A stretch of DNA of 64,000 nucleotides. It comes from Ostrea edulis (lineage: Eukaryota). The first letter of the stretch is position 1. Each line of letters starts with the position of its first letter. The stretch lies in assembly GCF_947568905.1 (NCBI RefSeq), contig NC_079169.1, positions 16,802,001-16,866,000 of the forward strand, given 5' to 3'. Under the pieces are notes generated by a model. It did not search any database and had not been told where the DNA came from. It was given only the letters and a program-made list of their open reading frames with translations. The position numbers and the translations under genes were made by a program. Of the stretch, positions 19,101-62,371 are shown one piece after another.

Positions 19101-22100
19101 ATCTTCGGCAGACCACTAGCGTGAGAGTACCCATGACCTCCACAACACAGGCGACATGTCTCTACCCCGGCAGAACACGTCCAGGTGCTGAAAGCCTTTA
19201 GTCCAGCAGAAATGGCATGAAGCTATAGAATTTAAGAATTGTTATCACATGGTTAATACCATTAAATTCTAAACATTAGTGATAAAACAGCACCGAATAA
19301 AAACGTTTTCTCTAAATCGGAAAGATTCGATTAACTTCTTTCTCGTCTCAGTTTCGTTGACCCCAAAATTTTGGATGTGGGTCTGAAATTACCTGGGGCA
19401 TAGACTCCAGATTTCCATCCTCAATTTCCGCTGTCGCTTTAAGGTAAAAATCGTACATGAACCGCCCAGCAAAGTACATAGCATAAGAGGTGGCAAGTAG
19501 TGGAAACAGCTTGTATTGTTGAGTTTGGTAGTCTATAATCTGTGCCTCTTCACCTCTATAAACAAAATAGTTCGCATTCAGAAAAGATCTTCAACACAGT
19601 AAAAGGTCCTAAGTACCCCCTGCTTGTCGTAAGAGGCGATTAAATGGGGCGGTCCTTCCGATGAGACCGCAAAAACCAGGGCTCTGTGTCACAGCAGATG
19701 TGGAACGATAAAGATCTCTTCCTACACAAAGGCTTTAAACGCCAAGCATAGGCCTAAATTTTGTAGCCCTTCACCCGGCAATGGCGACATCTCCATATGA
19801 ATGAAAGATTCTCGAGTGGGACGTTAAACAATATACAATCAATCAATATTTAAATGATTTTTCATGGGATGTTTCTAAATCATTTTCTCAAAATTACTGT
19901 TTCATTGTCCAAGTCCAAACAAATTGTAAATCTTATTATAGTTGGATTATACATAACAACAAAAAGCACAGGTGCCAGGTTAAAACTGATCAATAAAACA
20001 ATTAACAAAACGAAGCTCATTACTCCCATGTATGTTAACACCTAATAAACAGCAACAAGCTAGCCCATTCACTGTTACACAGGAAAGGTCCAAGCAGAAA
20101 TAAATACATGTTTCAATTGACTGATGGTATATATCCTGCAAATATTTTGCGAGATCAAAAGAGAAAAACAAGGAAATATGTTTTATAGGACTTAAATTTC
20201 ACTTTAAAAAATCAAAAGTTTGAGAGCTCAAGAGCTTAGGTATATAGAAAAAAAATTTACAACTTTAATTTCATTTTGAGAAATCAATAAGTTCAAGCCA
20301 TCGAGAGTCATCTGTAATTACCCGTTCAATTCAGTAGATTTTCATTCACCTATGTTTTGTCAAAAAAAGAAAATCAATTGCTAATTCAATTTTCATATAA
20401 TATCCTTTACGGAGGAACTTCTGTTTACATCACAGAGGCTTGCTTTTTATGGAAAGTTATTCGAGTACACATATAAAATCTAAAATCTATATATTTTGTA
20501 AAATAATCGAGACGGTGGATATCAGCTGGGATAGCTTGTTAGAGTGTCTGACTAGTGAATATCAGCTGAGATAGCTCAGTGGTTAGAGAGCCTGACTAGT
20601 GGATATCAGCTGAGATAGCTCAGTGGTTAGAGTGTCTGACTAGTGGATATCAGCTGAGATAGCTCAGTGGTTAGAGTGTCTGACTAGTAGATATCAGCTG
20701 AGATAGCTCAGTGGTTAGAGTGTCTGACTAGTAGATATCAGCTGAGATAGCTCAGTGGTTAGAGTGTCTGACTAGTAGATATCAGCTGAGATAGCTCAGT
20801 GGTTAGAGAGCCTGACTAGTAGATATCAGCTGAGATAGCTCAGTGGTTAGAGTGTCAAACTAGTGGATATCAGCTGAGATAGCTCAGTGGTTAGAGTGTC
20901 TGACTAGTGGATATCAGCTGAGATAGCTCAGTGGTTAGAGAGCCTGACTAGTGGATATCAGCTGAGATAGCTCAGTGGTTAGAGAGCCTGACTAGTAGAT
21001 ATCAGCTGAGATAGCTCAGTGGTTAGAGAGCCTGACTAGTAGATATCAGCTGAGATAGCTCAGTGGTTAGAGAGCCTGACTAGTATAAGGAAGGGCCCCC
21101 GGGGCTGATTTCCTACCCAGTCATATATTTTCTCCTTTCCCACTACACTATTTAATTTATGGAATATTAGGAACACATTATGTACATGTCTAGGTTGTGG
21201 GATACAATAGAGACTAGGGCTGAAACGATACGCCCCCTTCACGATACGATACATATTGCAATACTTATGCCACATTCAAAACTTTCAATACGATACAATT
21301 CACAAAAGAAACCAATAATAACATTGAAGAAAAGATTAATTACCAAGATTCACATTCATGATTTTAAAAGCAAAATGTTTCCAAATTGTCAAACTGTAAG
21401 ATGCATGTTGGCTCTGTAGTATAAACTGATAAAGTTCATTATTATTTTCACAAGACTCAAGGCAAACAACAGTCTAGATGTTATTTGACGCTATTTTGTC
21501 ACTCATGTAAAATAATCATTGCAGGCTGAACCTGGCCCCAAGACCATAAACTGAGAATAGATTTATGTCTAACTTTCAAATCCAGCTAACTTTGGAAATA
21601 ATTTTCATAAACAAATAAAACTTTCAGTGTATGTTTGAATTTGATTTGATTTTATAAACCTGCAGTTTTTCAAACATCTGCGCTAGATAAATCTTCAGAT
21701 ATAAGTAATCAATATTTTTACTTAAGTCTATTCTCAGTTTNNNNNNNNNNNNNNNNNNNNNNNNNNNNNNNNNNNNNNNNNNNNNNNNNNNNNNNNNNNN
21801 NNNNNNNNNNNNNNNNNNNNNNNNNNNNNNNNNNNNNNNNNNNNNNNNNNNNNNNNNNNNNNNNNNNNNNNNNNNNNNNNNNNNNNNNNNNNNNNNNNNN
21901 NNNNNNNNNNNNNNNNNNNNNNNNNNNNNNNNNNNNNNNNATGACGACAACAACTGTCAACTCTTGAAATAACTCATTCAATTCTTGAGTCAAAGTTAAA
22001 CCAGTCCAAGAAAATTTCCACTCTTGAAATATCAACTCTTGAAAACAAGTGTCAACTCTTAAGATAATTCATTCAACTCTTGAGATAAATCATATTTCGT

Positions 22101-33400: not shown

Positions 33401-36257
33401 TATAAGTATCACTAGTCCCACAGGCCTTATCAGTCACCAGAGTATTAGTTATAAGTATATTAGTCCCACAGGCCTTATCAGTCACCAGAGTATTAGTTAT
33501 AAGTATCACTAGTCCCACAGGCCTTATCAGTCACCTGAGTAGTAGTTATAAGATCATCATCCACTGTACTGTACAATCTCAGATCCTCCACACTGACCAC
33601 TATACTGAATAACCCCTACTCCAGATTGATAGAAATAGATATCATGCTTGACATCTATATTTTTATGCATTTTCAGTTGTAAATTACTAAGTATTCAGTG
33701 TTTTTCATGCAGGAATTGTTACTTTATTTAGACAATTTCCCCTCACAAATATTCCCAAACTTTCCAAATGAGATTAAGTGATTAAAGCTTTATTTCAACT
33801 TTATAAAAAGGTTTTTCATTTTGTCATAGAATGAATTTAATTGTTGCAATATGATCTGATTTGCATCAGTTTACACTTTAAAATCCGTGAAACAAAATAT
33901 TTCAGATATATCTTTGTTTTGCACTATATCATTCAATCATCATGCAGATATTGATATATATTTTTTTATCCCGGTGTATTGAGTACGTCTTGTTGACATC
34001 AAGAAAACAATCTGTATTGGACAGGTTTCATTCTAATGATTTTCTATTTAATAGAAGGCCTAAAGCTGCAATGTAAATTAAGAAATAATACTAATAACAA
34101 GCATTCTATAAGTATTTTTTTGCGTAATATTCTGCATGAGCCCTCCCAATAACTTTAATTGTTACAGTATGATTGATTTTTGCATTTTCCTAAATTCTAA
34201 TATTCAAAACATGTCAAGGATCATCTCCAAACAAGGATATTTTTATAGTCGCATAAAACAACTCTTCATTCGTATCCCCAGCCTTGAGTTCTACTGCTAT
34301 GTAGGCACAACCTCACCGAGTCGTCCTCCAGTATTCTGTACAATGGAGCATCTAAAGACCGGCATTTTTTGCTTCTGTCTGTGTTTCTGTTAATATGTGA
34401 TATCTAGATCTCTTGTGTGTTTTAAATAAAAAATCACATATTTTTGGACAATCTGGGGGATGAAAGGTGAAGATTACGAACAGTGATCAATCTCATAACT
34501 CCTATAAAGGTGAAGATAATGAACAGTGATCAATCTCATAACTCCTATAAGCAATACAAAATAGAGTAGGGCAAACACGGACTCTCGGATATACCAGAGG
34601 TGGGATCAGGTGCCTAGGAGGACGTTCTAATACCAAATATTAAAAGCATTTTGATCTCTTGTAACATACAGATGTAGATGCAGTGAATTAGATAAAGTGG
34701 TATACATTGAATTATATAGATCTCACACCATAAAAAAAAAATACAGGGAACTAGACATTGATATTCTGTACGTTCCGTGATAATGCCGACACCAATTTGG
34801 GGTTTTTCCAGGGACGGGTTGTTACTGTTCTTATCCGTAGAAAAATCAGCGTTTACGTGTCTGCATTGTGATAAGACAGTGTTGACACCAGCATTACAAT
34901 GTCATAGAACCCAAAGATGCCGGATATCCGTTGATCACCCCGGATGGCTAGAATTTTGCATCTGACATCAACCATCTCCTGATCTGTGAATGTGAAAGGG
35001 GCTTAACAGGCGATATGTATAATCGGGTTAAACAGGTTGGGAACACTTCCCGGCCATCAGAGAGATATATCTGATCTGTCCCAATATTTCTCAAAGGACT
35101 ACTGTTCTGTAGCTATTTAACAGGTTGGGAACACTTCCCCTATAGCAAGATATTCTTGCTAAAACGTGATTATCCCTCTCTAGCGAGAGAAAATATATCT
35201 CGTACAACCGAGAAAAACACCCGTGGAGTACATCTCTTCGTGTTTCATGTGAAAAGAAGAAAAAGTGCTAAAATGTCTGATACTTCTGCAAATATATTAA
35301 TCAAACCAAAAACGCTCACGGTGTGCATTGGATTTCAGACTGCTTCCTTCTCACTAGTGTTGAAAAATCGGGAAAAATTTCATACTGGATAATCAGTCAT
35401 AATCGGAGGAACTGTAACAATCAATGATGGATATAATTGGTATAAATTTACATGTAGTTGATAAATGTTTATTATTTTGGGGGTTATTTCTATTTAGTTT
35501 TATGAATATGTGCAGCATACACACTAGGTGGTGTTACTGAATTCCCACTTTTTAATGCGGTGTCCACTCTGACTATCCCCACACGTCTCAATATAAAAGC
35601 GGGAATAACAGTCAGATGAATCTTGGAGTAGATATTAATTAGTGTACAGGCGACAATCGATTATGAAAAATAGAATCGAAATTGAAGAGCCAAAAACGAT
35701 TGACAATCAACTGCCGGCGACAATCGTTTCCTTACTACCTCTTAAGCAGCTACTTTGATATGAAATTTCTGACTCTGTTGTCAATTTTATAGAGACAATT
35801 CGCGTCATGTTGAGTGTATGTCGCACTTATTCAACATTGCACAGAATTTGCCATTATTTTAAATAAAGGCGCAGAAACACCCGTTTATCATTTTATGATA
35901 ATGTGAGGCTATGGGGGATTTCCCAATCCCATCCCCACATAGGTTAACCTATAGCCTAAGCCATGAAGATGTAGACTTGGTAATACCCAACTCTGTGTTT
36001 CATTTATTTGAAGTTGCATTTACTTACCCTAGGCCTAGTTAGAATTGCAATTACTGACAGTTATCGACAGGTTCAAAGTCCAACCTACCACTGATCATTA
36101 CAATACATATATTGTAAACGTTACACTTACGTATATAACGCCTCCTTCTCACTTTTTCGGGACCTCTGTAAATAAAATTTGTGAGATTTTCAACGTCAAA
36201 AGTGGCATTCCTTCTTTCTCTTGCAAGATCCGAATTTACTCCTTCTATTGCCGCCAT
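16094..36257 (-). CDS. ACOX1: Peroxisomal acyl-CoA oxidase 1; 14 exons, 2010-nt CDS, 669 aa
   Basis: All 13 introns are GT-AG and phases join into one frame. Motifs [42 protein letters not shown], catalytic YEGEN, LGRYDG, and PTS1 SKL*. Confidence 0.97.
16364..16584. repeat. ~50-bp tandem repeat with embedded CA microsatellite, ~4.4 copies (ACOX1 intron 13)
   Basis: GTTACAGAACTG starts at 16364, 16412, 16462, 16512 and 16564. Confidence 0.9.
16621..16827 (-). CDS. ACOX1: ACOX1 exon 13 (207 nt)
   Basis: DGFFDSNQV...[47 protein letters not shown]. Confidence 0.95.
17007..17153 (-). CDS. ACOX1: ACOX1 exon 12 (147 nt)
   Basis: [15 protein letters not shown]...[19 protein letters not shown]. 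Confidence 0.93.
17413..17735. mobile_element. Fold-back repeat with nested palindromes (17413-17466 and 17609-17735) in ACOX1 intron 11
   Basis: AGGTTATATACTTTGTATGGGAAATATGACGACC pairs with its near-perfect reverse complement around an ACGGACC...GGTCCGT core. Family not identified. Confidence 0.55.
18168..18273 (-). CDS. ACOX1: ACOX1 exon 11 (106 nt)
   Basis: [35 protein letters not shown]; donor GTAAGT. Confidence 0.92.
18583..18735 (-). CDS. ACOX1: ACOX1 exon 10 (153 nt)
   Basis: [23 protein letters not shown]...AYEHRAA. Confidence 0.93.
19032..19222 (-). CDS. ACOX1: ACOX1 exon 9 (191 nt, catalytic Glu)
   Basis: [14 protein letters not shown]...[17 protein letters not shown]...[15 protein letters not shown]. 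Confidence 0.96.
19393..19555 (-). CDS. ACOX1: ACOX1 exon 8 (163 nt)
   Basis: [30 protein letters not shown]...GNLESMPQ. Confidence 0.95.
19603..19847 (+). mobile_element. Deu-domain SINE-like element in ACOX1 intron 7
   Basis: CCCCTGCTTGTCGTAAGAGGCGATTAAATGGGGCGGTCCTTCCGATGAGACCGC...CAATCAATCAAT. Confidence 0.8.
20515..21084 (+). repeat. 44-bp tandem array (~13 copies) of a tRNA-like 5' half containing a Pol III A-box
   Basis: Unit GTGGATATCAGCTGAGATAGCTCAGTGGTTAGAGTGTCTGACTA; TAGCTCAGTGG fits the A-box consensus TRGCNNARYGG. Confidence 0.93.
21085..21147 (+). mobile_element. 3' half of the tRNA-like (LTR-like) element that seeded the 44-bp array
   Basis: Degenerate T-arm CCGGGGCTGATTTCC, then TTTTCTCCTTTCCCACTACA, similar to the 3' end of 37823-37936. 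Confidence 0.55.
21741..21940. other. Assembly gap (200 N) in ACOX1 intron 7
   Basis: Direct. Confidence 1.
23239..23408 (-). CDS. ACOX1: ACOX1 exon 7 (170 nt)
   Basis: [25 protein letters not shown]...[13 protein letters not shown]; the acceptor is purine-rich (see findings). Confidence 0.9.
23556..23910. mobile_element. MITE with ~24-bp TIR (CATCTAACCTC(C/G)GATGTAT) in ACOX1 intron 6
   Basis: Inverted copies near 23556-23580 and 23887-23910; no clear TSD. Confidence 0.55.
24459..24574 (-). CDS. ACOX1: ACOX1 exon 6 (116 nt)
   Basis: [39 protein letters not shown]. Confidence 0.95.
24914..26546 (+). mobile_element. HINE / non-autonomous Helentron with a 142-bp internal tandem array (ACOX1 intron 5)
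   Basis: 5' AAACAAGAG, subterminal ATGCCCCC, (GACC)n microsatellite, 3' palindrome ATGCCCCC...GGGGGCAT then AAAAA. Repeat-derived ORFs are spaced 284 bp apart (2 x 142). Confidence 0.85.
27049..28670 (+). mobile_element. HINE with ~167-bp Cg170-like satellite units, interrupted by a nested HINE
   Basis: 5' AACAAGAGGCCC...AGGTCACCTGA; 3' palindrome AGGTCACCTGAATGAATTCAGGTGACCT-AAAAA; units contain GAAGATTTTCAAAGAAATAATGCATTTTCACTATATGA...AACCCCTG. Confidence 0.85.
27581..28192 (+). mobile_element. Nested HINE with a 145-bp internal repeat (~3 copies)
   Basis: 5' AACAAGAGG, (GACA/GACG)n microsatellite, 3' ATACCCCCC...GGGGGGTAT. The host unit resumes exactly (AATTTT|...|AAAGAGGCATCC). Confidence 0.85.
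29316..29456. repeat. Near-perfect ~140-bp palindrome (fold-back element core)
   Basis: GAAGATATGAAGATGTATTCACCCAAGAAATATCATATTCCCC pairs with GGGGAATATGATTTTTCTTGGGTGAATTACATCTTCATATCT. Confidence 0.75.
29661..29780 (-). CDS. ACOX1: ACOX1 exon 5 (120 nt)
   Basis: [40 protein letters not shown]. Confidence 0.95.
30016..30123 (-). CDS. ACOX1: ACOX1 exon 4 (108 nt)
   Basis: [36 protein letters not shown]; donor GTGTGT. Confidence 0.93.
30455..30487. repeat. (CT)n microsatellite (ACOX1 intron 3)
   Basis: Direct. Confidence 0.95.
30533..30693 (-). CDS. ACOX1: ACOX1 exon 3 (161 nt)
   Basis: [12 protein letters not shown]...[11 protein letters not shown]; donor GTAAGG. Confidence 0.95.
30914..32447. 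repeat. 26-bp minisatellite, ~59 copies (CCTAGGCCTCACAGCTAACAGACAGT), ACOX1 intron 2
   Basis: Direct periodicity; flanks resemble the HINE ACCAAGTTTG / ACAGAC microsatellite region. Confidence 0.97.
32843..33005 (-). CDS. ACOX1: ACOX1 exon 2 (163 nt)
   Basis: [25 protein letters not shown]...; polyT-CTACAG acceptor, GTAAGT donor. Confidence 0.93.
33146..33553. repeat. 49-bp tandem repeat, ~8 copies (ACOX1 intron 1)
   Basis: Unit GAGTATTAGTTATAAGTATCACTAGTCCCACAGGCCTTATCAGTCACCT. Confidence 0.95.
34463..34622 (-). mobile_element. PLE 3' terminal fragment with its terminal ~43 nt duplicated in tandem
   Basis: AAAGGTGAAGAT.A.GAACAGTGATCAATCTCATAACTCCTAT occurs twice. Confidence 0.8.
35511..35630. 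repeat. Unidentified ~120-bp dispersed repeat, copy 1
   Basis: Homologous to 42356-42474; contains TATAAAAG inside a CTCTGACT...AGTCAGA stem. Confidence 0.6.
36131..36257 (-). CDS. ACOX1: ACOX1 exon 1 coding part (127 nt)
   Basis: [42 protein letters not shown]; donor GTAAGT. Confidence 0.93.
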
Positions 36258-36262
36258 TTTAA
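36250..36262 (-). promoter_or_regulatory. YY1-like motif (AAAATGGCGGC) overlapping the ACOX1 start codon
   Basis: Motif match only; no TATA box seen upstream. Function is inferred. Confidence 0.3.
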
Positions 36263-46018: not shown

Positions 46019-46559
46019 AGGAACATGGACACGATTTGAGCTGAAAAATTTTCCCATTTTATTTTTCAATTTTTAATGTTTAGAATGCTTTACTAAGGTA
46101 TTTGTAATGGTCAGCAAAAATTTGAATGTCGGTCGTCGAGGTACGTGGGAGTTACAGAGCTCACAATTCTTTGTTGTTTAAACAGGACCCGTGCCATGTT
46201 TTTGTTTAGATAGGTTAAATATACAAGTAAACAGTTTCGTTTAAAGCAGATTTTTTCAATTCTAAAGTTAATTCTGAACACAATTAAATAGTTTTTAGTG
46301 CTTGGCACATCTCATTTTGTTTTAAACATGCTGTTTTCTATTAAGCAATCTATATGTAAACAAAAATATGACACGAGCCTTGTTGACATAACAAAGCATT
46401 GTGAATGCTGCATCTCACTTGTAACTCAACAACTTATATTCAAAGTTTGGTTGATTATTAGAAATACTCTAGTGAAGCATTGTAAACATTTTTTGTAAAC
46501 AATAAAAATGGAAAATTAAAATTTGAAAAAATTTCAACTCAAACCGTGTCCATGCCCCT
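46019..46559. mobile_element. 541-bp Kolobok-like MITE with TTAA TSD
   Basis: TTAA-AGG(A/G)(A/G)CATGGACACG...CGTGTCCATGCCCCT-TTAA; AG...CT (RR...YY) termini with TTAA duplication is the Kolobok hallmark. Confidence 0.75.
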
Positions 46560-46600
46560 TTAAATAAAAAAAGAAACTTGATTTTGAGAATGAGGTTCTA

Positions 46601-49600
46601 TCACTGATATTTTCCGTACGCCATTTTGGAAACATACAAATGCCTTGGATTATACACTGACGGATCAACACGTCTCACTGCATTCTCATTATCTCCAAAA
46701 AAGAATCCTCTTTGGTGTAAATTACGTGGACCTTGGAGAACTGTGTTAGGGACCCCAGGTACATTTCTAGGAAGATTTCTATCAAAACGGGGTGCTTGTC
46801 TAATATTCAGACTGCTCGGATTGGGGGCATCGGGGAACCTTGGGACGGCATGGGTTAGTTGTCTTGGTGTAAAATGAGGTCGTCTGTGTAAACCAGCAGT
46901 ATTCCCAAGAACTGGGATATTTGAAGGTGCTAAGCGTCGGTTGTCTGGTGCTACTGATCTGGAAGTTGCTCGGGATCCAACTGGCAAGTTCAACCGCCCC
47001 ATAGATCCTGGAATGACAGGTTCAGATGTTAAACTGGGTCGCCTTTGATTGAATGCGGCGTTAAAGTCTATATCAGATGCAGGACCATCGAACTGACCTT
47101 CGATGGCAGCACTCAAAAAGGGCTGGTTTCTAGGAAGGTTGGGATCTGGAATAGCGACTCCAAAAGGCCTTGGACTAGGTGTAATTGGCCTTATTAGTTG
47201 AGGCCTTGTTAGTGGTCTGATATCCATCAACTGATCAGCTCGCGGCATCGGACGGCGGTCAATAGGGGGATCCATTTGGGGCATTGATACACGAGATGCA
47301 GGTGAAAGTGCCATCGGTGGTGTTAAAGATGCCCTAGATGGAAAATCTCTTCCACTAAATGGTATTCTTGGTCTTCCCTCTAAACCATTAAGATCGTTTC
47401 TTCTTCGTTCATTAAATGAACGTCGGGGACTCCTCATGAATCGTTCATCAAAATCATCCACATCGCCCCTACGCTGGTTTTCAAAGATATCTGTTTCCTC
47501 TAATCGGTTAATATCTTCACCCATTGGTCCTCTGACTGTGAATGGCGATGATGGAGTTCTGGGAATGAATCTATTCTGAAATCCTGGCGGTGCTCCCCTG
47601 TTTACATCAAAACCAGCATCATCTACTGTATTCGATACATCATCGATGTTTAGAAGAAAGGATATCAAGAAGCTTCCTTTTGGTCGCCTTCTTGGGGATC
47701 GATGAAGAAAACGTGTCAATTCTCGAGAAACTGGAGTTATTGAAAATTGTGAATCAGGTCTCCTTGAAGTTGGGAAACGTGGCTGAGAGAAAGGAGTGAA
47801 TGATCTCCTATTCATTTCATTGAATCGATCATTCAAACTATCATCTCTTTGATCATCAAATCTGTCAGCAGGACTAAGTCTATTGTTTCGAGGATCATCA
47901 AAACGATCATCTCTTGGATCACTAAATCTTCTATTCGGACTGAATCTCTGTTCTCCAAAATCGCCATCTGTGCGGTCAAGTCTATCTTCGGGGCCAAATC
48001 TATTTTCTCGAGGATCAAATCTATTCTCTCGAGGATCAAATCTATTTTCTCGAGGATCAAATCTATTTTCTCGAGGATCAAATCTATTTTCTCGAGCATC
48101 AAATCTATTTTCTCGAGCATCAAAGCGATTTTGTTCTATATTAGAGTTGGGGTCGTCTAACGGAAAACGTCTTCTAAAAGTGCCTGTATTAGATCTAAAC
48201 CCAGTTGGCCTAACTCTTTGACGGTTTCGAGGAATGGCAATACCGATGGGTCTACTAAAGTCATTTATAGGATTTTCAATTGGACGAATGGGTCTCTGAA
48301 TGAGATTTTGGAAAATAGGTTGGTTACGGGAGGGCGGTTGTAAAGCCCTTGATGGAATAAAAGGAAATCGACTTTGTGATAGTGTACTTGGCGCAGGGAC
48401 AGCTATACCAATAGGTCTTATGTTACCAGTTGGTATAGAAATAGAAGAACGTACAGTAGGTTGAGTGTCTGACAGTCTTCGAGTTGAATCGTCATGGAAT
48501 GGAAAGAAAGCCTCATTTCGTTGATCGCGAGTATCTACGCGCGGTGGTGGTGGTGGTGGTACAATAATGGCACGAGGTCTCACAATTCCTCGTCTTTGAT
48601 CCCTTTGAACTGGATCTAGATTTCTTGAAATGGGATCAAACTGCCTTGGAAAGGCAAAATTATCCCTAATGAAATTTTCTTGTATACGTTCATCAAGAGG
48701 TGACGGCAAATTAAATTCTCTAGAACGTCGATCTTCCCTTCTTATTGATTCACCTCTATTGTCAAGAGGGAAAGTTTCTCTTCTCCTATTTTCAAAATGG
48801 CCTGAACGAGGAGTTGCATTGCTAAATCCATCTCTTGGATCTCTAAAATCTTGGTTTGAGAACCTCCGTCTGTGTGAAAATCTAGGGCGGACGTCATCGA
48901 ATGTTGCTCTGGATGGGAAGTTATTAGGTATGCTTGGAGAAGATGATTGGTCTACCGGTGAGCGTCCTACAGGTAGGTCTCTGGATCTAGGACGTGATAC
49001 AAAATCATCAAATCTTACTGGGGACCTACGTGAACTGGACGACGGGAAAACATCGTTGCTTCTACTGGTAGATCTAGGATCAAAGTCCCCAATTCTACGG
49101 GTTCCACGGATACTAGCTAAAGTATCACTGGTAGAAGAAGGCCTGTGGAGGAAGTCATCAAAGCTTGTACTACGTACAAAATTATCCAGTCCACTAGGTG
49201 CTCGGGGTACAGACCTTTGAGCAAAATTAACCGTTTGCGGAATCATGTTATTTCTATTTACGCGAATATTTACTCTATTAACTGTAAATGGAAAATTTGA
49301 TCTAGGTCTGAAAGTTGATGTTAAAGGCGTAGGCAGGTCTGTTCTACGACTGGATAAAGGAGATGACATTCTTGGTCTCATATTGGAATGAATGCTACTC
49401 CTGAGAGGAAAAGGAGCAGTAGACGCCCTAGACATTAAAGGGTTATTACGCGGAAATGTCGATCCAACGTTTAAGGATCCTGAAGCAATGTTAAAGGATC
49501 CAGAAGGAACAAATCCTCTTTGATGATGAACAAATCCAGATGCAAAGGACGAAGACGACACACCTCTATTGATGTTATTATTATTATTCCGGTGTAAGCC

Positions 49601-51135
49601 GCTAGAGATTGGAACTCTTGGTATTGAACCTATACCTCGAAATGCAGCTGTGTTTAATACTGATGCTGGATGGAATGGAACGTTTGGTATTGACGCTGTA
49701 TTCGGCAGTGACCGTAATAATGAGGGATGAATTAAACCAGATACCCGACCAGGATTGGGTAAAGATTGGTGGATAGCGTTTGCGATGCGGTGACCGTTGT
49801 TGGCAGCTGCCTGACGTAAGGCATTGACTGCGTGATGAATGGGGTTTAAACCCGAATGTATTAAGCCAGACCCAGGTGAGGTTACAGAGGTATGCTGTAC
49901 AGAGCCCATATGAGAGATACGACCACCGGATAAAGCTCGATGAATAGCAGCTATTGGGTGAAGCGGAACCTGAGGAATCCGATTGATGTTTGCAAGCGCA
50001 CTGCTTAACAAACTCGAGGAACGACCTTGTCTTAACGATGGTACTTGAACTGGACCCAGAGGGGCTTGTGCACCACTGATAACACGTGTTGCGTGGGAAA
50101 CAACAGTACCAGAACTTCCTCTTAATGACTCTGGTAAAGTAATGCTGGGTATTGCAACTTCTGGGGCATTTGGAATTAAAGATCCAAGGTTGACATACGT
50201 CACATCCTGTCCGGGAGCCGAGGGCCCTCTTTGCCGTAAAGCACTTCGTCGAATTAAAGCCATAAAATCGTTGAAGTTAATGACTGGAACCCTTGATGGT
50301 TGTGCTGCACCTCTGGGTTGTGTTCTTGGAGATGTCCCAGTGGATCCTCCGGGAAATGGTACATTTGGTGCATTTTGAATTTGCAACATATTTTGGACCC
50401 TATTCCCGCCACCACCATTTCGAGACAATAGAGGAGAAATTGCCGATTCTATGCTCTGGGATACCGGTGTTTCTGCTACAGGGATGTAGATTGGTTCAAA
50501 TGGCACTTGAGTTCCCAGCCGGCGTCCATTACCAGGTACCGAAAAGCGTGGCTGTGGTTCCGGAAGAGCTCCAAGCGATCCTGCAGAATTGCTGGCGAAG
50601 CAACCTAGAAGATCAGAATGAAGTAGAATTAATATTTAAAATTTTTAATTGTAGACATCACGATTATTCCACAGTCATTGTATTGTGCTCAACGTCGTTC
50701 ATAATATACATGTATTGATACATTTTGAATTACTGCAGTACAGAATTAGAAATAAAAGATTTTGAAGCATGCAAACACATGCATTATCTATTTTCATCAT
50801 TATGCAACGTTGATCTTATAAATGAAATAGTAACATGATATTAAAGACGAAAATGATGTTTTTGTATCAATGTATTAATATTTATTGATATTATGGAACT
50901 ATCAGTTCAATATATACAAATTAATTTGTATTTATTTCAAATGCTAGGATGTAATTTACAACACTCTTAGAATTAGATTCTTTTCGTGCAAAAATTTGTA
51001 TATGTGTAAGAATCTCCTTGACTGAAGTATTCTGATTAATGTCATGTCACAAATCACATGTAATATATTTTTTCAAACACAAACCCTCATTTAATCCAAA
51101 TATGGTGAAAATGAAAACAAGGAAAATATATTAAC

Positions 51136-51201
<66 letters not shown>

Positions 51202-51838
51202 AATTTACTTGTCTCTATAAAAATGCGTAATTTAAAATAAAACTGCAGAATTACATCGGTAGCAAAATAAAATAAAATTACAGAAATATATTGGTAACAG
51301 AATTATTCCTGTCGAACTTATACTGACAATTTCAGTTTTACTCTTTGGTAAGGTTTTTAATGAAATGAACATTTGGGTGAAATCCGCTTTTTAGTTTGAA
51401 TAGAGAAACACCGTGGATCGTCACCCTTGGCTAGCGAAGATGTTACAACCCAGGTACATCGACAGATGAGGTGATCCAGGGCACAGAAAACTAAGCATAA
51501 GAACCAAACATTTAATTTTTATAAAGTTTCGTAATTTCAATTTCAACATGACGTTCTGTAGTGATTTAATATAGCTTCATTTTATAAAAAAGAAAATATT
51601 TCTAACAAATCTATATGGAAACACATAGAAAAAAACATGGAAGACAACATGCATGTATATTTCTCTCGAGTATGTATGTATTTTTTCATACTAATACCAC
51701 TAAAGAGTTAATCAGTATCCTGTGTACAGTACATATACCACCTAATATGGAAATCAAACATACATTTGTAGCTCCGGTTTATTTTGAAAGAGTTACCTTA
51801 CCCAGAGCACAAAGAATTGATATTCCATAGAGCATCAT
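46601..51838 (-). CDS. Uncharacterised secreted low-complexity Arg/Pro/Ser/Asn-rich protein (~1,340 aa); exon 1 coding 51838-51802, exon 2 from 50604 to 46601 (or to a donor at 46638)
   Basis: 3.9-kb stop-free, GC-elevated ORF. Upstream mini-exon ATG ATG CTC...CTG G|GTAAG splices in phase 1 to TTCTAG|GT TGC TTC GCC, giving signal-peptide-like MMLYGISILCALGCFA. TATA box is at a canonical distance. Confidence 0.85.
47990..48136 (-). repeat. Coding 21-bp tandem repeat, (ENRFD[P/A]R) x ~7
   Basis: Visible in the ORF translation and as TCTATTTTCTCGAGGATCAAA units. Confidence 0.92.
51139..51196. repeat. (CT)n microsatellite in intron 1 of the secreted-protein gene
   Basis: Direct. Confidence 0.95.
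51802..51838 (-). CDS. Exon 1 coding part (signal peptide) of the secreted protein
   Basis: MMLYGISILCAL + G; donor GTAAGG at 51801. Confidence 0.8.
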
Positions 51839-51873
51839 GTTGACTTCATCAGCGCCCTAGTTCATTCTGCAAA

Positions 51874-51906
51874 AACTAGAATCGGCTAACTGACGGAGAT
51901 TTTATA
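51874..51906 (-). promoter_or_regulatory. Core promoter: TATAAAA (51906-51900) and Inr-like TCTAGTT (A at 51877)
   Basis: TATA-to-Inr spacing is 29 nt; the ATG lies 39 nt further downstream. Confidence 0.7.
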
Positions 51907-53042
51907 AGCGCGATATTATGGTGTGTCATCTTGTAGTCGCCATGTCGATCTCATCATTTTGGGCTTTCTGTCGTACATATTTTATGGTTGTTGTTTCCTT
52001 GTAAATTGTTGATGTCAATCAAATAATCAAAAATTAAATCTAATCGAAGTAGTCTCTGATATTTAGATTTATGTAGTTTATGTTTTGTGGCATTCGAACA
52101 TTAAAATTGAACTTAAAATTGGCTAGTAACTTCCGTATGTTGCTTTGTTGTGAAATTATTGTGATTGTCAATTTGTAAATTGATTTATTGATGTTGAAGT
52201 AAAAGTCTGAGTTTCAGTTCACTGCAAACTGTAGTGGAACATGAGGTGATACGTAAATGGTATTTTTTTGACATTTTACTCTCCACATGTTTCAACAAAA
52301 ATGAAATTCCTGTGCAAAAATGCAGGAAAATTAATGAAATACTGAGAAGCTTAATGTGGCATATTTTTGTTTTTATGTACATGATAACAACCACTATGGC
52401 AGTCTGTGAAATTGAAGGCAAATCTCGAATTGGCATATTACTTCACAGTTCAGTATCTAGATTTATAAAATTTGAAGGAAAATTTTATACATATAAAAAC
52501 ATGGTGCCTGGTATTTTTTTTTTTTTTTTAGGTGCAGTGAATTGAATTTAACCCTTTTGCACTTAAAGTTTGATTTTTATAGCAGAAACTTGTACATCTG
52601 AAATATATATACATGCCTTCCACCTAAAGGATATTTATCAAAACTGTAATCATTGTCAGATACAGAACATCAATTAATAACATGTTACGCTCAGATCTTT
52701 TTTAAGGAAACAGGTATATTAGTCGTAAGTTCGGGGGACTATGAGACAGTAGAGATTTTAAAAGAATGAAATGAGATTTGTTGCAAATTGATTTAGTTCT
52801 TGGCAGGTGGTTTGTTCTGTTCCAAGATAGAAAATCCCGGATGTAAACTAAACGCTGATTCTAAGCTTTTGGGGCTTCCTACATTTCACATTCTGGGGTC
52901 AAGTCTGTTTTATAGTCGGCAGTCAAGGTAAATGTGTTAATCGTTGATGACTACATTGGTCATGGGTCATAAAGGTTAAACAGTCTGGTTTGAATTTTCC
53001 ATTTTGAACATCTAGAGACAAATTTAAAGGTAAGTTTTTAAG

Positions 53043-57457: not shown

Positions 57458-58654
57458 GTATTTTCAATTATTTTTACAGGGAGTTTGATATTGATCTAAC
57501 AATTGAATAATCTGTCCTTGCAATGGAAATAAATGTTAATCGGCCTAACTGTATTTGAATGAACCTAAAGATTCCGCCCTCGTCTAAAGTGTCACCCACC
57601 ACCCACCCATAACAAGCAATGGTCATCTCCTTTCGTTAAAAAGCACGGAATTTGTATATTTATTCCTGAAGCACCTATTGAACTGTACACGAGACACAGC
57701 CATCACCTTCACCTCCGTCGGCAAATGCTCTTGATTTAATATAACTGTTCACTTGCTCCTTTGCATGAGAACAATCGTAAAAATCCCGAACGCACTAATT
57801 GGGGGGAATTAATTTATTACGGACAAGCTGACCGTATCCAGAGGCAGTGTCTGGTTATAATCGGCGATTATCTGCTGTAACCGTCCCCCGATGTTTTAAA
57901 CCCGTGCCTTCATTCAACTTTCCCCCTCACGGCAGGTACTAAAAATTTGGATTCATGAAAACCGCTTTCATTTCCTCCCTAGACCCTTCACATCAATCAT
58001 AGTAATGAGGTCCAGCAGACGTCGTGAATTTTATTAAGGAAAAAAACAAGGTATCGTGAGTGAAATGAAGAAAATGTGTGTGTACTTTACCTAAACACAA
58101 GAGAGGCCGAACTAGTTTGTCCATGCTGAAAGACACATCTAAAAGATGTTTATGTCGATAAAAAAAAAAAATTACGGACAAGAAAGGACTGCGTGTTGAT
58201 GTAAATATTTACAGTTAATCAAGCCCATGTGCAAAATTATTTTGTTTTCTAAACATTTATTCGGAACTTTTCACAATTACACACACAATAGCTAAAATGC
58301 CAATGGTTTACTTTTAACGTCGGCTGGGTTTTCTACAACAAAACATGCAAAAGGTTGAATAATCAAAAATTACTTCAACATAATCCTCACACGTAGAAAT
58401 CTTCTTACCAAGATTTACAAATGTATTTTGTCTTTACTCACCCCACCATAGGATATGCAGGGGGGTGGGGGGTGGGGGGGTGGGGGGAGGTTACATATCA
58501 AATCAAAATCAGAAATATTTTATTAAAGTGTCACATACCAATACAATACCAATATACAATTCATATGTATATATAACAATGTTTCAATATTAAGAGCATT
58601 GGTATCCAGCCATATTGACATATGAAACGTTATCATTGAAGCACATATCATAAT

Positions 58655-59164: not shown

Positions 59165-59887
59165 ATTATACAACTGTCGTATACAAGATACTTGTTATTG
59201 GAGCAGCTCCCTCTCGTAGGAGTTTTCCAATACTCATATAAACATAGCTCAAAGGTTTTCCATCCCTCGATGTAGAACAACTCTCTATTATAAGCATGTA
59301 CGATTAGTTTTACCTTCACCTGCAATATTGTAGAACAGTCTGATAGAAGCCTTTCCCACATTGAATATAGGTTTGAGAAAACGACATTCGTGACAATTCG
59401 TAAATATCCAGAAAATAAAATCAATACGAGATTATAATAGCAACTCAAACTTTAGACAATGAGTTTCTTTCTCTTTGCTGAGGCAATCTGTTGACTCAGG
59501 TTATTTTAATATAAATTGGAAATAACTCACATTTGAGTAACTGTCCTGTAAACAACAACGAAAAATGAATACGTGCAGAAAATATATCATTTGGACATAA
59601 CTAGGTGAACAGCAATAGAAATCACCCACGCAATGCCAACTACAAAACCTTTCTTGATGTATAGAACTATATTAAAACTACAAATCCGTAGACCATGCAT
59701 TATATTACATTATGTACGCACCTTTTTCTCACTGGATCCACCCATTTTTCTTCCCTTTTCTCCTCTTATGATTATAATGGGGGTTGTCCTTTTATATCAT
59801 ACTTCAGAATAATGTGTTTTCAAAATATTGTAGATTTCATCTATCATAAAGAAGTTCCAGCTTTTAAAACTCAATATAGTTACAGAT

Positions 59888-62371
59888 AATATCTGCTCTT
59901 TGTATCGGGTATTGTGCAGGCATTGTCTGTTGTAATATCTGACCTTTGTATGGGGTATTGTGTAGGCATTGTCTGTTGTAATATCTGACCTTTGTATGGG
60001 GTATTGTGTAGGCATTGTCTGTTGTAATATTTAACCTTTGTATGGAGTATTGTGTAGGCATTGTCTGTTGTAATATCTGACCTTTGTATGGAGTATTGTA
60101 TAGCCATTGTCTGTTGTAATATCTGACCTTTGTATGGGGTATTGTGTAGGCATTGTCTGTTGTAATATTTAACCTTTGTATCGGGTATTGTGTAGGAATT
60201 GTCTGTTGTAATATCTGACCTTTGTATGGAGTATTGTGTAGGCATTGTCTGTTGTAATATTTGACCTTTGTATGGGGTATTGTGTAGGCATTGTCTGCTG
60301 TAATATCTTACCTTTCTATGGGGTATTGTGTAGGCATTGTCTGTTGTAATATCTTACCTTTGTATGGGGTATTGTGTAGGCATTGTCTGTTGTAATATTT
60401 AACCTTTGTATGGGGTATTGTGTAGGCATTGTCTGTTGTAATATCTGACCTTTGTATGGGATATTGTGTAGGCATTGTCTGTTGTAATATTTGACCTTTG
60501 TATGGGGTATTGTGCAGGCATTGTCTGTTGTAATATCTGACCTTTGTATGGAGTATTGTGTAGGCATTGTCTGTTGTAATATCTGACCTTTGTATGGGGT
60601 ATTGTGTAGGCATTGTCTGTTGTAATATCTGACCTTTGTATGGGGTATTGTGTAGGCATTGTCTGTTGTAATATCTGACCTTTGTATGGAGTATTGTGTA
60701 GGCATTGTCTGTTGTAATATCTGACCTTTGTATGGGGTATTGTGTAGGCATTGTCTGTTGTAATATCTGACCTTTGTATCGGGTATTGTGTAGGCATTGT
60801 CTGTTGTAATATCTGACCTTTATATGGGGTATTGTATAGGCATTGTCTGTTGTAATATCTGACCTATGTATGGGGTATTGTGTAGGCATTGTCTGTTGTA
60901 ATATTTGACCTTTGTATCGGGTATTGTGTAGGCATTGTCTGTTGTAATATTTAACCTTTGTATGGGGTATTGTGTAGGCATTGTCTGTTGTAATATCTGA
61001 CCTTTGTATGGAGTATTGTGTAGGCATTGTCTGTTGTAATATTTAACCTTTGTATTGGGTATTGTGTAGGCATTGTCTGTTGTAATATCTGACCTTTGTA
61101 TGGGGTATTGTGTAGGCATTGTCTGTTTTAATATTTGACCTTTGTATGGGGTATTGTGTAGGCATTGTCTGTTGTAATATCTGACCTTTGTATGGGGTAT
61201 TGTGTAGGCATTGTCTGTTGTAATATCTGACCTTTGTATGGGGTATTGTATAGGCATTGTCTGTTGTAATATTTAACCTTTGTATGGGGTATTGTGCAGG
61301 CATTGTCTGTTGTAATATTTGACCTTTGTATGGGGTATTGTGTAGGCATTGTCTGTTGTAATATCTGACCTTTGTATGGGGTATTGTGTAGGCATTGTCT
61401 GTTGTAATATTTAACCTTTGTATGGGGTATTGTATAGGCATTGTCTGTTGTAATATTTAACCTTTGTATGGGGTATTGTATAGGCATTGTCTGTTGTAAT
61501 ATTTAACCTTTGTATGGGGTATTGTGTAGGCATTGTCTGTTGTAATATCTGACCTTTGTATGGGGTATTGTGTAGGCATTGTCTGTTGTAATATTTGACC
61601 TTTGTATCGGGTATTGTGTAGGCATTGTCTGTTGTAATATTTAACCTTTGTATGGGGTATTGTGTAGGCATTGTCTGTTGTAATATCTGACCTTTGTATG
61701 GGGTATTGTGTAGGCATTGTCTGTTGTAATATTTAACCTTTGTATTGGGTATTGTGTAGGCATTGTCTGTTGTAATATCTGACCTTTGTATGGGGTATTG
61801 TGTAGGCATTGTCTGTTTTAATATTTGACCTTTGTATGGGGTATTGTGTAGGCATTGTCTGTTGTAATATCTGACCTTTGTATGGGGTATTGTGTAGGCA
61901 TTGTCTGTTGTAATATTTAACCTTTGTATGGGGTATTGTATAGGCATTGTCTGTTGTAATATTTAACCTTTGTATGGGGTATTGTGCAGGCATTGTCTGT
62001 TGTAATATTTGACCTTTGTATGGGGTATTGTGTAGGCATTGTCTGTTGTAATATCTGACCTTTGTATGGGGTATTGTGTAGGCATTGTCTGTTGTAATAT
62101 TTAACCTTTGTATGGGGTATTGTATAGGCATTGTCTGTTGTAATATTGAACCTTTGTATGGGGTATTGTATAGGCATTGTCTGTTGTAATATTTAACCTT
62201 TGTATGGGGTATTGTGTAGGCATTGTCTGTTGTAATATCTGACCTTTGTATGGGGTATTGTATAGGCATTGTCTGTTGTAATATCTGACCTTTGTATGGG
62301 GTATTGTGTAGGCATTGTCTGTTGTAATATCTGACCTTTGTATGGGGTATTGTGTAGGCATTGTCTGTTGT
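59888..62371. repeat. 46-bp minisatellite, ~54 copies (ATTGTCTGTTGTAATATCTGACCTTTGTATGGGGTATTGTGTAGGC)
   Basis: Direct periodicity; includes a 690-bp higher-order duplication. Confidence 0.97.

Follow-up and report, generated by a model that had tools for sequence, protein, structure and literature searches.

Results

The LOC125683852 gene

The window analysed here is a 64,000-nucleotide (nt) stretch of the Ostrea edulis genome (contig NC_079169.1, positions 16,802,001 to 16,866,000), in which positions are counted from the first letter. On its minus strand, to which all features of the gene described below belong, lies a two-exon gene with a stop-free frame that runs from 50604 to a TGA at 46601-46603. 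Its product is the RefSeq "uncharacterized protein LOC125683852" of 1,346 amino acids (aa), which matches all of exon 2 at 100% identity and coverage and whose length equals the 12 codons, one split codon and 1,333 codons of the two-exon model. This long, Arg-rich chain, almost free of Lys, Cys, Trp and Tyr, is the subject of the present report. The original prediction had described it as unrecognised, which is right in that the protein is uncharacterised, but it had already been annotated in RefSeq. The RefSeq protein was taken as the full-length product, and exon 2 alone served as the query in searches.

Alignment of Ostrea, Saccostrea and Crassostrea virginica DNA delimits a conserved proximal promoter of about 400 nt (51878..52240), a stretch to which tblastx hits had first pointed. 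A TATAAAA box starts at 51906, and a YYANWYY initiator follows about 30 nt downstream, with its A at 51877, which serves as the estimated start of exon 1 (51802..51877) and gives a 5' untranslated region (UTR) of 39 nt. The 37-nt coding part of this exon (51838-51802) encodes MMLYGISILCAL and the first base of Gly13, matching the RefSeq N-terminus. The donor reads GG before GTAAG and the acceptor TTCTAG before GT (50605/50604), so placed that the frame continues in phase 1 across an intron of 1,197 nt (50605..51801, GT..AG), which was defined by sequence, TRF and the read depth of a sequencing run, X2, considered below. Exon 2 (46601..50604; 4,004 nt, 1,333 codons plus the stop TGA) holds the entire mature protein. 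The TATA/initiator promoter, the 37-nt signal-peptide exon and the single exon of about 4 kilobases (kb) that had been predicted are thus all in place. A short 3' UTR (46487..46600), down to which contigs of X2 reach (46487-46548), enters a very high-copy interspersed repeat, and no canonical AATAAA was seen at the 3' end of the gene.

Much of this arrangement is shared with other oysters. The three-species promoter alignment has a mean column identity of 74%, with the TATA box and several blocks of 15-25 nt invariant, and Saccostrea and C. virginica also keep the surroundings of the start codon, the 37-nt length of the coding exon, the initiator and the GTAAG donor. A genomic contig of Magallana gigas has its acceptor at the same codon position, and the RefSeq models of Saccostrea cucullata, C. 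virginica and M. gigas begin with a homologous signal peptide, M(I/M)R.GILILCVSGC. No paralogue turned up when the O. edulis genome was searched, and the gene is single-copy. LOC125683852 is a real gene, its model supported by RefSeq, by the conserved promoter and exon 1, and by the conserved acceptor.

Some smaller features lie in its non-coding parts. The 5' UTR contains a two-codon upstream open reading frame (ATG AAC TAG, 51863-51871) whose ATG is kept in all three aligned species; in Saccostrea, where this ATG lies in frame, the RefSeq model begins with it and so gains MKWKKDEVN, which is probably a mis-annotation. Intron 1 carries a perfect (CT)30 microsatellite (51138-51197, by TRF), at which the contigs of all runs break. 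Very high-copy interspersed repeats occupy 46150-46547, in the 3' flank and UTR, and a region around 51324-51522 in intron 1; their word depth in whole-genome runs is 7,000-105,000 (25,000-105,000 over 46150-46547), against about 20-140 for the gene.

A filter against Lys, Cys, Trp and Tyr

The exon-2 product (1,333 aa) contains 187 Arg, 3 Lys, 6 Tyr, a single Cys and no Trp, where base composition alone predicts about 56 Lys, 57 Tyr, 39 Cys and 15 Trp. It is rich in Pro (12.2%), Ser (11%), Asn (7.6%) and Phe (6.7%), and with about 14% Arg and 9% acidic residues it has a net charge of +72. The sole Cys lies inside the signal peptide, one Lys stands in RRRPKG and the other two fall in the last 11 residues. 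The mature chain, as had been noticed at the outset, therefore has no Cys or Trp, and one Lys before its last 11 residues despite abundant Arg. The same exclusions recur in all four genera compared (Ostrea, Saccostrea, Crassostrea and Magallana), with 0-2 internal Lys, no Cys in the mature chain and 0-2 Trp; the orthologues have 2-3 internal Tyr.

AGA and AGG, each one transition away from a Lys codon, make up 105 of the 187 Arg codons, and Arg-to-Lys is normally the commonest replacement of Arg. Roughly half of the positions that are Arg in O. edulis carry another residue in any one orthologue, namely Gly, Asn, Ser, Thr, Gln, Asp or Pro, and Lys is not among the twelve commonest replacements in any of them. 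Even the single internal Lys of O. edulis occupies a position that is Arg elsewhere (RRRPK before GSF, versus RRPR before GSF). Judged from these alignments, the filter against Lys, Cys, Trp and nearly all Tyr is real and selected.

It might still be asked whether such a filter could arise neutrally, through mutational bias or as low-complexity repeats expand, given that parts of the middle of the protein are young tandem repeats and that the gene evolves fast. Against this stand the shortage of the residues that base composition predicts, the place of Lys outside the twelve commonest replacements at a set of Arg codons of which 105 are one transition from it, and the recurrence of the exclusions in four genera whose synonymous sites are saturated. 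The depletion of glycosylation sites described next is specific to one motif, with control motifs at normal levels. Contradicted by the composition expectation, the Arg replacements and the sequon depletion, a neutral origin was rejected, and we regard it as scarcely credible.

Sequon depletion and entry into the secretory pathway

A further exclusion, not part of the original prediction, concerns N-glycosylation. The four orthologues contain 1, 1, 2 and 2 N-x-S/T sequons, at non-homologous positions, against 12-15 expected from 1,000 shuffles within 40-residue windows (the composition being 7.6% Asn and 15% Ser plus Thr). None of the 1,000 local shuffles was as low in sequons as the observed sequence, in each of the four species. 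Control motifs, counted in O. edulis, occur at normal frequency: S/T-x-N 11 times versus 12 expected, Q-x-S/T 5 versus 6 and D-x-S/T 8 versus 9.4. Avoidance that is specific to this motif makes sense only if the chain meets oligosaccharyl transferase, and it is therefore independent evidence for transit through the endoplasmic reticulum (ER); it also points to a need to stay unglycosylated.

This agrees with the start of the protein. The end of the signal peptide (…G-CFASNSA, 50582..50604, placed by hydropathy and alignment) includes part of a hydrophobic core, ISILCALGCF, with a mean Kyte-Doolittle value of 2.5; equivalent cores are found in Saccostrea and C. virginica, and the N-terminus is kept in M. 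gigas. By the -3/-1 rule, cleavage is likely after CFA or SNSA, either of which would remove both Cys. No other 19-residue window has a mean hydropathy above 1.6, so that no transmembrane segment is indicated, and the C-terminus is hydrophilic and not KDEL-like. The protein is probably secreted, as had been predicted, the conserved signal peptide, the missing transmembrane segment and the purged sequons all pointing the same way, and it would pass through the ER and leave the cell unglycosylated.

Evidence at the transcript level is less straightforward. Four sequencing runs were aligned to the gene, none of them on record as RNA. Three have even cover across intron and exon and are therefore DNA. 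The fourth, X2, has a word depth of 24-45 over 46548-50604 and of zero over 50727-51124 of intron 1, and therefore behaves as RNA. Its contig ends exactly at the predicted acceptor, which confirms 50604, and continues into 78 letters that differ from exon 1. Of the 30 letters shown of this 5' piece, 22 match the genome once, about 14.2 kb upstream and on the strand of the gene, at a site 845 nt past the end of the window (about 64845-64915) that lies beside a conserved non-coding element. For the 8 letters at the joint, no match was found between the two sites and no micro-exon in the window or the upstream stretch, and the genome has no GT donor at the distal match. This joint could represent an alternative distal start, read-through or a chimera. 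The joint from 51802 to 50604, which the original prediction had named as its own test, is not seen in this single RNA-like run.

If the distal joint were genuine, the gene might be transcribed mainly from a distal upstream promoter with the signal-peptide exon skipped, to give either a non-coding RNA or a disordered, Arg-rich protein that stays inside the cell. The exact end of the X2 contig at the acceptor and the unique match on the same strand, beside a conserved element, speak for this reading. The 30 letters shown, however, hold no in-frame ATG (they contain an ATG-TGA and an out-of-frame ATG), and the unmatched joint letters and the missing genomic donor leave room for a chimera or a read-through artefact. 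Ostrea, Saccostrea and C. virginica share exon 1 together with its TATA promoter and donor, the RefSeq models of four species begin with the signal peptide, and a depletion specific to sequons would be hard to explain for a cytosolic protein. We thus consider a non-secreted product very improbable.

The runs also show that length polymorphisms in the coding exon are all in frame (+3 at 48205 and -3 at 48543). The first is a 3-nt insertion relative to the reference, present in all four runs; the second is the loss, in two runs, of one Pro codon from a poly-Pro stretch.

Conserved blocks in a probably disordered chain

The modular layout that had been proposed, with a His-rich N-terminal part, an Arg/Asp/Phe middle and a heptapeptide array, is borne out, and it takes the form of conserved blocks alternating with fast-changing low-complexity sequence. 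Alignments and invariant columns define a conserved N-terminal module (residues 46-350, 49592..50506) that has nearly no acidic residues and is rich in His, Ala, Ile, Leu and Ser. It includes the blocks VPFEPIYIP, VPVINFNDF, TYVNLGSLIPNAPEVAIPS, LLSSALANINR and PLHPIAAIH. The four genera agree in 28-46% of the columns over residues 51-250, and residues 201-300 contain 10 His and no acidic residue.

Sliding composition and alignment mark out a variable polyampholyte middle of Arg, Asp, Glu, Phe and Pro (residues about 480-1100, 47342..49204), with small conserved islands such as FVR(R/S)(S/T)SFDDF, LPS.LDERIQ..F.R.NFA.P.QFDP and RPIGIA(I/V)P. Here TRF finds a 21-nt tandem repeat (47995..48132; 6.6 copies, 95% matches) that encodes ENRFD(A/P)R. 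The array is specific to O. edulis, the orthologues carrying other repeats in its place: Saccostrea has an array of about 220 residues made of ..RPIGPFD.. units, and Crassostrea has extra units containing RPIGIAIP. Within C. virginica, the orthologue occurs in lengths of 1,248, 1,374 and 1,429 aa, owing to duplication of a unit of about 126 residues with the motifs LPSSFDERIQ and RPIGIAIP.

Downstream of the array, RSPRRRPK followed by GSFLISFLLNIDDV (47636..47701) is, by a scan of basic pairs and alignment, the sole dibasic site kept in the four genera. What follows it is the most hydrophobic of the conserved blocks, the consensus being RSP.RR(P/S)(R/K)GSFLISFL(V/L)NIDDV. The most conserved block of all (residues 1157-1211, 47009..47173) has 60% of columns invariant in a 50-residue window and reads PRPFGVAIPDP..PRNQPFL.AAIEGQFDGP...ID.N.AFN.R...LTSEPV.P. 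in consensus. The protein ends in a conserved 12-residue tail, LY(V/I)SK(K/M)A(F/Y)G(K/R)(Y/F)x (46604..46639, from alignment of the four orthologues), where in O. edulis two of the three Lys in the exon-2 product are found, together with half of its six Tyr.

Short-range sequence biases run through the chain as well. Each of the four species has an excess of FD dipeptides (z +2.4 to +8.4), and some species only an excess of RF and NR; FR is depleted in three species, while PP and R.R tend to be low in all four. Together these biases form an (N)RFD grammar. AlphaFold2 finds no fold, as expected for the disordered chain that had been foreseen, its mean pLDDT (predicted local distance difference test) being 36.5 for residues 46-497 and 39.6 for the C-terminal 404 residues, with no residue at 70 or above and, in the N-terminal module, only short low-confidence helices. 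The model output is consistent with a protein that is intrinsically disordered and has no predicted fold.

The many RR and RRR sites had also been noted in the original prediction as possible convertase cleavage sites. There are 29 RR and 5 RRR sites in O. edulis, so the remark that they are many stands, but their number is explained by the 14% Arg: RR counts equal the expectation from local shuffling in all four species (29 versus 27, 24 versus 22, 19 versus 17 and 27 versus 20; z +0.4 to +1.7), and one of the 29 positions is conserved. A polyprotein precursor, cut at these sites by proprotein convertases into bioactive or antimicrobial Pro/Arg-rich peptides, would account for the signal peptide, for Pro/Arg-rich stretches such as RPRAIIVPPPPPPR and IRPLTRPQLIRPITPSPRP, and for the one conserved basic cluster, RR(P/S)(R/K), directly before GSFLISFL. 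Known neuropeptide and antimicrobial multi-peptide precursors likewise combine a signal peptide with many Arg-Arg pairs and a tandem heptapeptide repeat. Unlike in such precursors, the dibasic sites of the oyster protein are neither enriched nor conserved, on which ground a prohormone or convertase polyprotein was rejected as a candidate. The R-x-K/R-R motif is absent from the O. edulis protein, the tandem ENRFDPR units lack flanking dibasic sites and Gly-basic amidation signals, and the conserved blocks are 20-55 aa long and are not repeated peptide units. A precursor of this kind is improbable in our judgement; a single cut before GSFLISFL is possible.

A family confined to true oysters

Synonymous sites of the coding exon are saturated among Ostrea, Saccostrea and C. 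virginica (synonymous rate, dS, 1.1-1.6), and the ratio of nonsynonymous to synonymous rates, dN/dS, is about 0.28-0.39, a rough value in view of that saturation. Identity between genera is only 43-51%, with species-specific repeat expansions. A word-index protein search returned oyster proteins only, all of them unnamed, and a HMMER profile built from the four genera (1,134 positions) found six matches among 1.84 billion representative proteins, all from oysters and one of them the M. gigas gene LOC105324774. On these searches the family is confined to the true oysters (Ostrea, Saccostrea, Magallana and Crassostrea). The protein is thus lineage-specific, as had been anticipated, and the homology to a characterised intracellular protein that would have spoken against the prediction was not found, only uncharacterised oyster proteins being matched.

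Other resources were equally silent. Pfam gives no domain, its best hit being a sub-threshold RNase_Y_N (E 0.2, 11.5 bits versus a cut-off of 32), a PDB profile search returned no relative, and the look-alike score from the ESM Atlas (0.75) is under the informative range. No described shell-matrix family or domain homologous to LOC125683852 emerged from Pfam, PDB or the exhaustive profile search. The searchable literature contains no mention of LOC125683852, LOC111101587, LOC134271125 or LOC105324774, nor of K1PWD8, XP_022289827, XP_034331020 or six diagnostic peptides, and the supplements checked of papers on oyster shell, adhesive and transcriptomes hold no family identifier or tryptic-type peptide.

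An oyster-only distribution, identities of 43-51% with species-specific repeat expansions, length variation within C. virginica and the rarity of transcript-derived contigs are also what one might expect of a secreted protein with no part in a material, such as a fast-evolving reproductive protein of the egg coat or sperm, or a protein of mucus or the digestive tract, whose repeats would serve recognition or lubrication. Overall, however, dN/dS is well under 1, and the long invariant blocks and the conserved promoter are more readily understood from a conserved molecular interaction than from an arms race. We hold this reading to be unlikely, though it deserves some weight.

Flanking features

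Several conserved non-coding elements lie in the same order upstream of the gene, one in the window (57794-58088) and four past its end (about 64626-64862, 66699-67270, 70537-70984 and 71460-71768). They are kept in Saccostrea and/or C. virginica (the last in C. virginica only), with 76-89% identity over about 240-570 nt in the best-matching species, while neighbouring synonymous sites are saturated. They have no long open reading frame and no 3-base periodicity of mismatches, and a search of the 10 kb upstream gave no Rfam match. The element near 64.6 kb contains homeodomain-like CAATTA sites. These elements may be distal enhancers of LOC125683852 or of a neighbour.

Between the gene and the more distant elements, a 46-base-pair satellite (59887-62371; 54 copies, 94% matches, G-over-C skew 0.44) yields spurious overlapping open reading frames of 120-260 aa. 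On the other side of the gene, at 36126-36260, lies an exon whose translation is 82% identical to that of the first coding exon in the acyl-CoA oxidase gene of Saccostrea. That exon is downstream of the gene in both Saccostrea and Ostrea, and synteny is therefore kept. Farther along in the same direction, positions 21741-21940 of the window are a run of N.

Discussion

The oyster protein belongs to a broad known kind, the lineage-restricted secreted low-complexity proteins of molluscs. With lineage-restricted molluscan shell-matrix proteins it shares a signal peptide, a single large exon for the mature chain, disorder, repeats whose number is species-specific, the lack of a Pfam domain and restriction to one bivalve family. 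Unlike these proteins as described so far, to which it is unrelated in sequence, it is basic rather than acidic, is not enriched in S-x-E phosphorylation motifs and is known here from its gene. An acidic phosphoprotein of the SIBLING kind was rejected as a candidate in view of the net charge of +72 and of S-x-E and S-x-[DE] counts of 3 versus 3 and 6 versus 10 expected.

Other secreted proteins offer partial parallels. Mussel foot proteins and sandcastle-worm cement proteins are also secreted, basic and disordered, and cation-aromatic stickers have been proposed for their coacervation. They need Tyr or 3,4-dihydroxyphenylalanine (DOPA) together with Lys, whereas the oyster protein has 0.5% Tyr and 0.2% Lys, is far longer and has Phe as its sole common aromatic residue. 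An adhesive based on DOPA and Lys, of the mussel foot protein kind, was rejected because the 1,333 residues include just 6 Tyr and 3 Lys, the orthologues being the same in this respect. Two further likenesses are offered as leads only. Amelogenin is secreted, Pro/His-rich, largely hydrophobic and disordered, has a short conserved charged C-terminal tail and self-assembles outside the cell, but there is no homology, and the oyster protein is several times longer and has an Arg/Asp polyampholyte middle. Tropoelastin and spidroin repeats are long extracellular chains in which cross-linkable residues are confined to short segments, and they undergo the coacervate-type reversible self-association that we propose for the oyster protein; they are rich in Gly, Ala, Val and Pro and nearly uncharged, unlike a chain with 14% Arg and 9% acidic residues, and again there is no homology.

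We suggest, tentatively and with rather less than even confidence, that LOC125683852 encodes an extracellular, self-associating disordered scaffold of Arg and Phe that would be cross-linkable only at its Lys/Tyr tail. After entry into the ER, the chain would be secreted unglycosylated and form a disordered scaffold outside the cell, for which shell matrix, cement and mucus are candidate locations. Contacts among Arg, Phe and Asp, arranged in the recurrent N-R-F-D grammar, could give reversible, coacervate-like self-association, and phase separation through cation-pi contacts would be compatible with that grammar (14% Arg, 6.7% Phe, enriched FD). Having no Lys, Cys, Tyr or Trp, the bulk of the chain would escape the quinone, lysyl and disulfide cross-linking of molluscan secretions. 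The C-terminal Lys/Tyr tail would be the exception and possibly a single anchor to the matrix, and the conserved N- and C-terminal blocks may be docking sites for a partner, be it another matrix protein, chitin or mineral. The filter might also follow an alternative logic, that of evading quality control in the ER, since the chain has neither a glycan timer nor a ubiquitin acceptor and offers no thiols for retention. Such evasion would permit bulk secretion of a long unfolded chain and is compatible with escape from cross-linking.

Several points weigh against the scaffold reading. Placement in shell, cement or another secretion is a proposal made from sequence alone, and phase separation and anchoring by the tail are likewise things that we infer. 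The low AlphaFold2 confidence comes from alignments of five sequences only and as such is a weak argument for disorder. With His (26), Gln (52) and Met (19) still present, the chain is not inert in the chemical sense. The sole RNA-like contig joins exon 2 to a distal non-coding piece and not to exon 1, and the orthologue contigs behind the protein collection all look genomic, which is compatible with low or very restricted expression. The absence of the family's identifiers and peptides from the searchable literature and the supplements checked counts on the same side.

The scaffold reading can be taken one step further, in a form that is speculative and rather doubtful as a whole. True oysters would then possess a scaffold that is both un-cross-linkable and glycan-free, a chain of some 1,300 residues of Arg, Phe and Asp character that might stay liquid or mobile in an oxidising and cross-linking secretion because it offers no residues to tyrosinases, peroxidases, lysyl chemistry, disulfide exchange or oligosaccharyl transferase, and that would be held by a 12-residue Lys/Tyr tether. 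To our knowledge, a material design of this kind, with an un-cross-linkable, glycan-free tethered chain, has not been described before.

Molluscan shells and glues are believed to owe their diversity to secreted disordered proteins that are specific to single lineages, and most of these are database entries only. Here the signal is unusually clean: in four genera, a chain over 1,300 residues long has stayed free of Lys, Cys, Trp and N-glycan sites and of nearly all Tyr, and such Lys and Tyr as are left lie for the most part in the conserved C-terminal tail. The filter and the C-terminal tag lead to concrete hypotheses on which chemistries are avoided and where anchoring may take place, and the chain offers a natural Arg/Phe-only sequence for the study of extracellular condensates. 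The test for sequon depletion is a cheap and general argument for ER transit where expression data are absent. If the proposal is true, an un-cross-linkable scaffold may lie behind a trait peculiar to oysters, for example cementation or the chalky deposits of the shell, and a link to either would connect a gene and a trait that are both specific to oysters.

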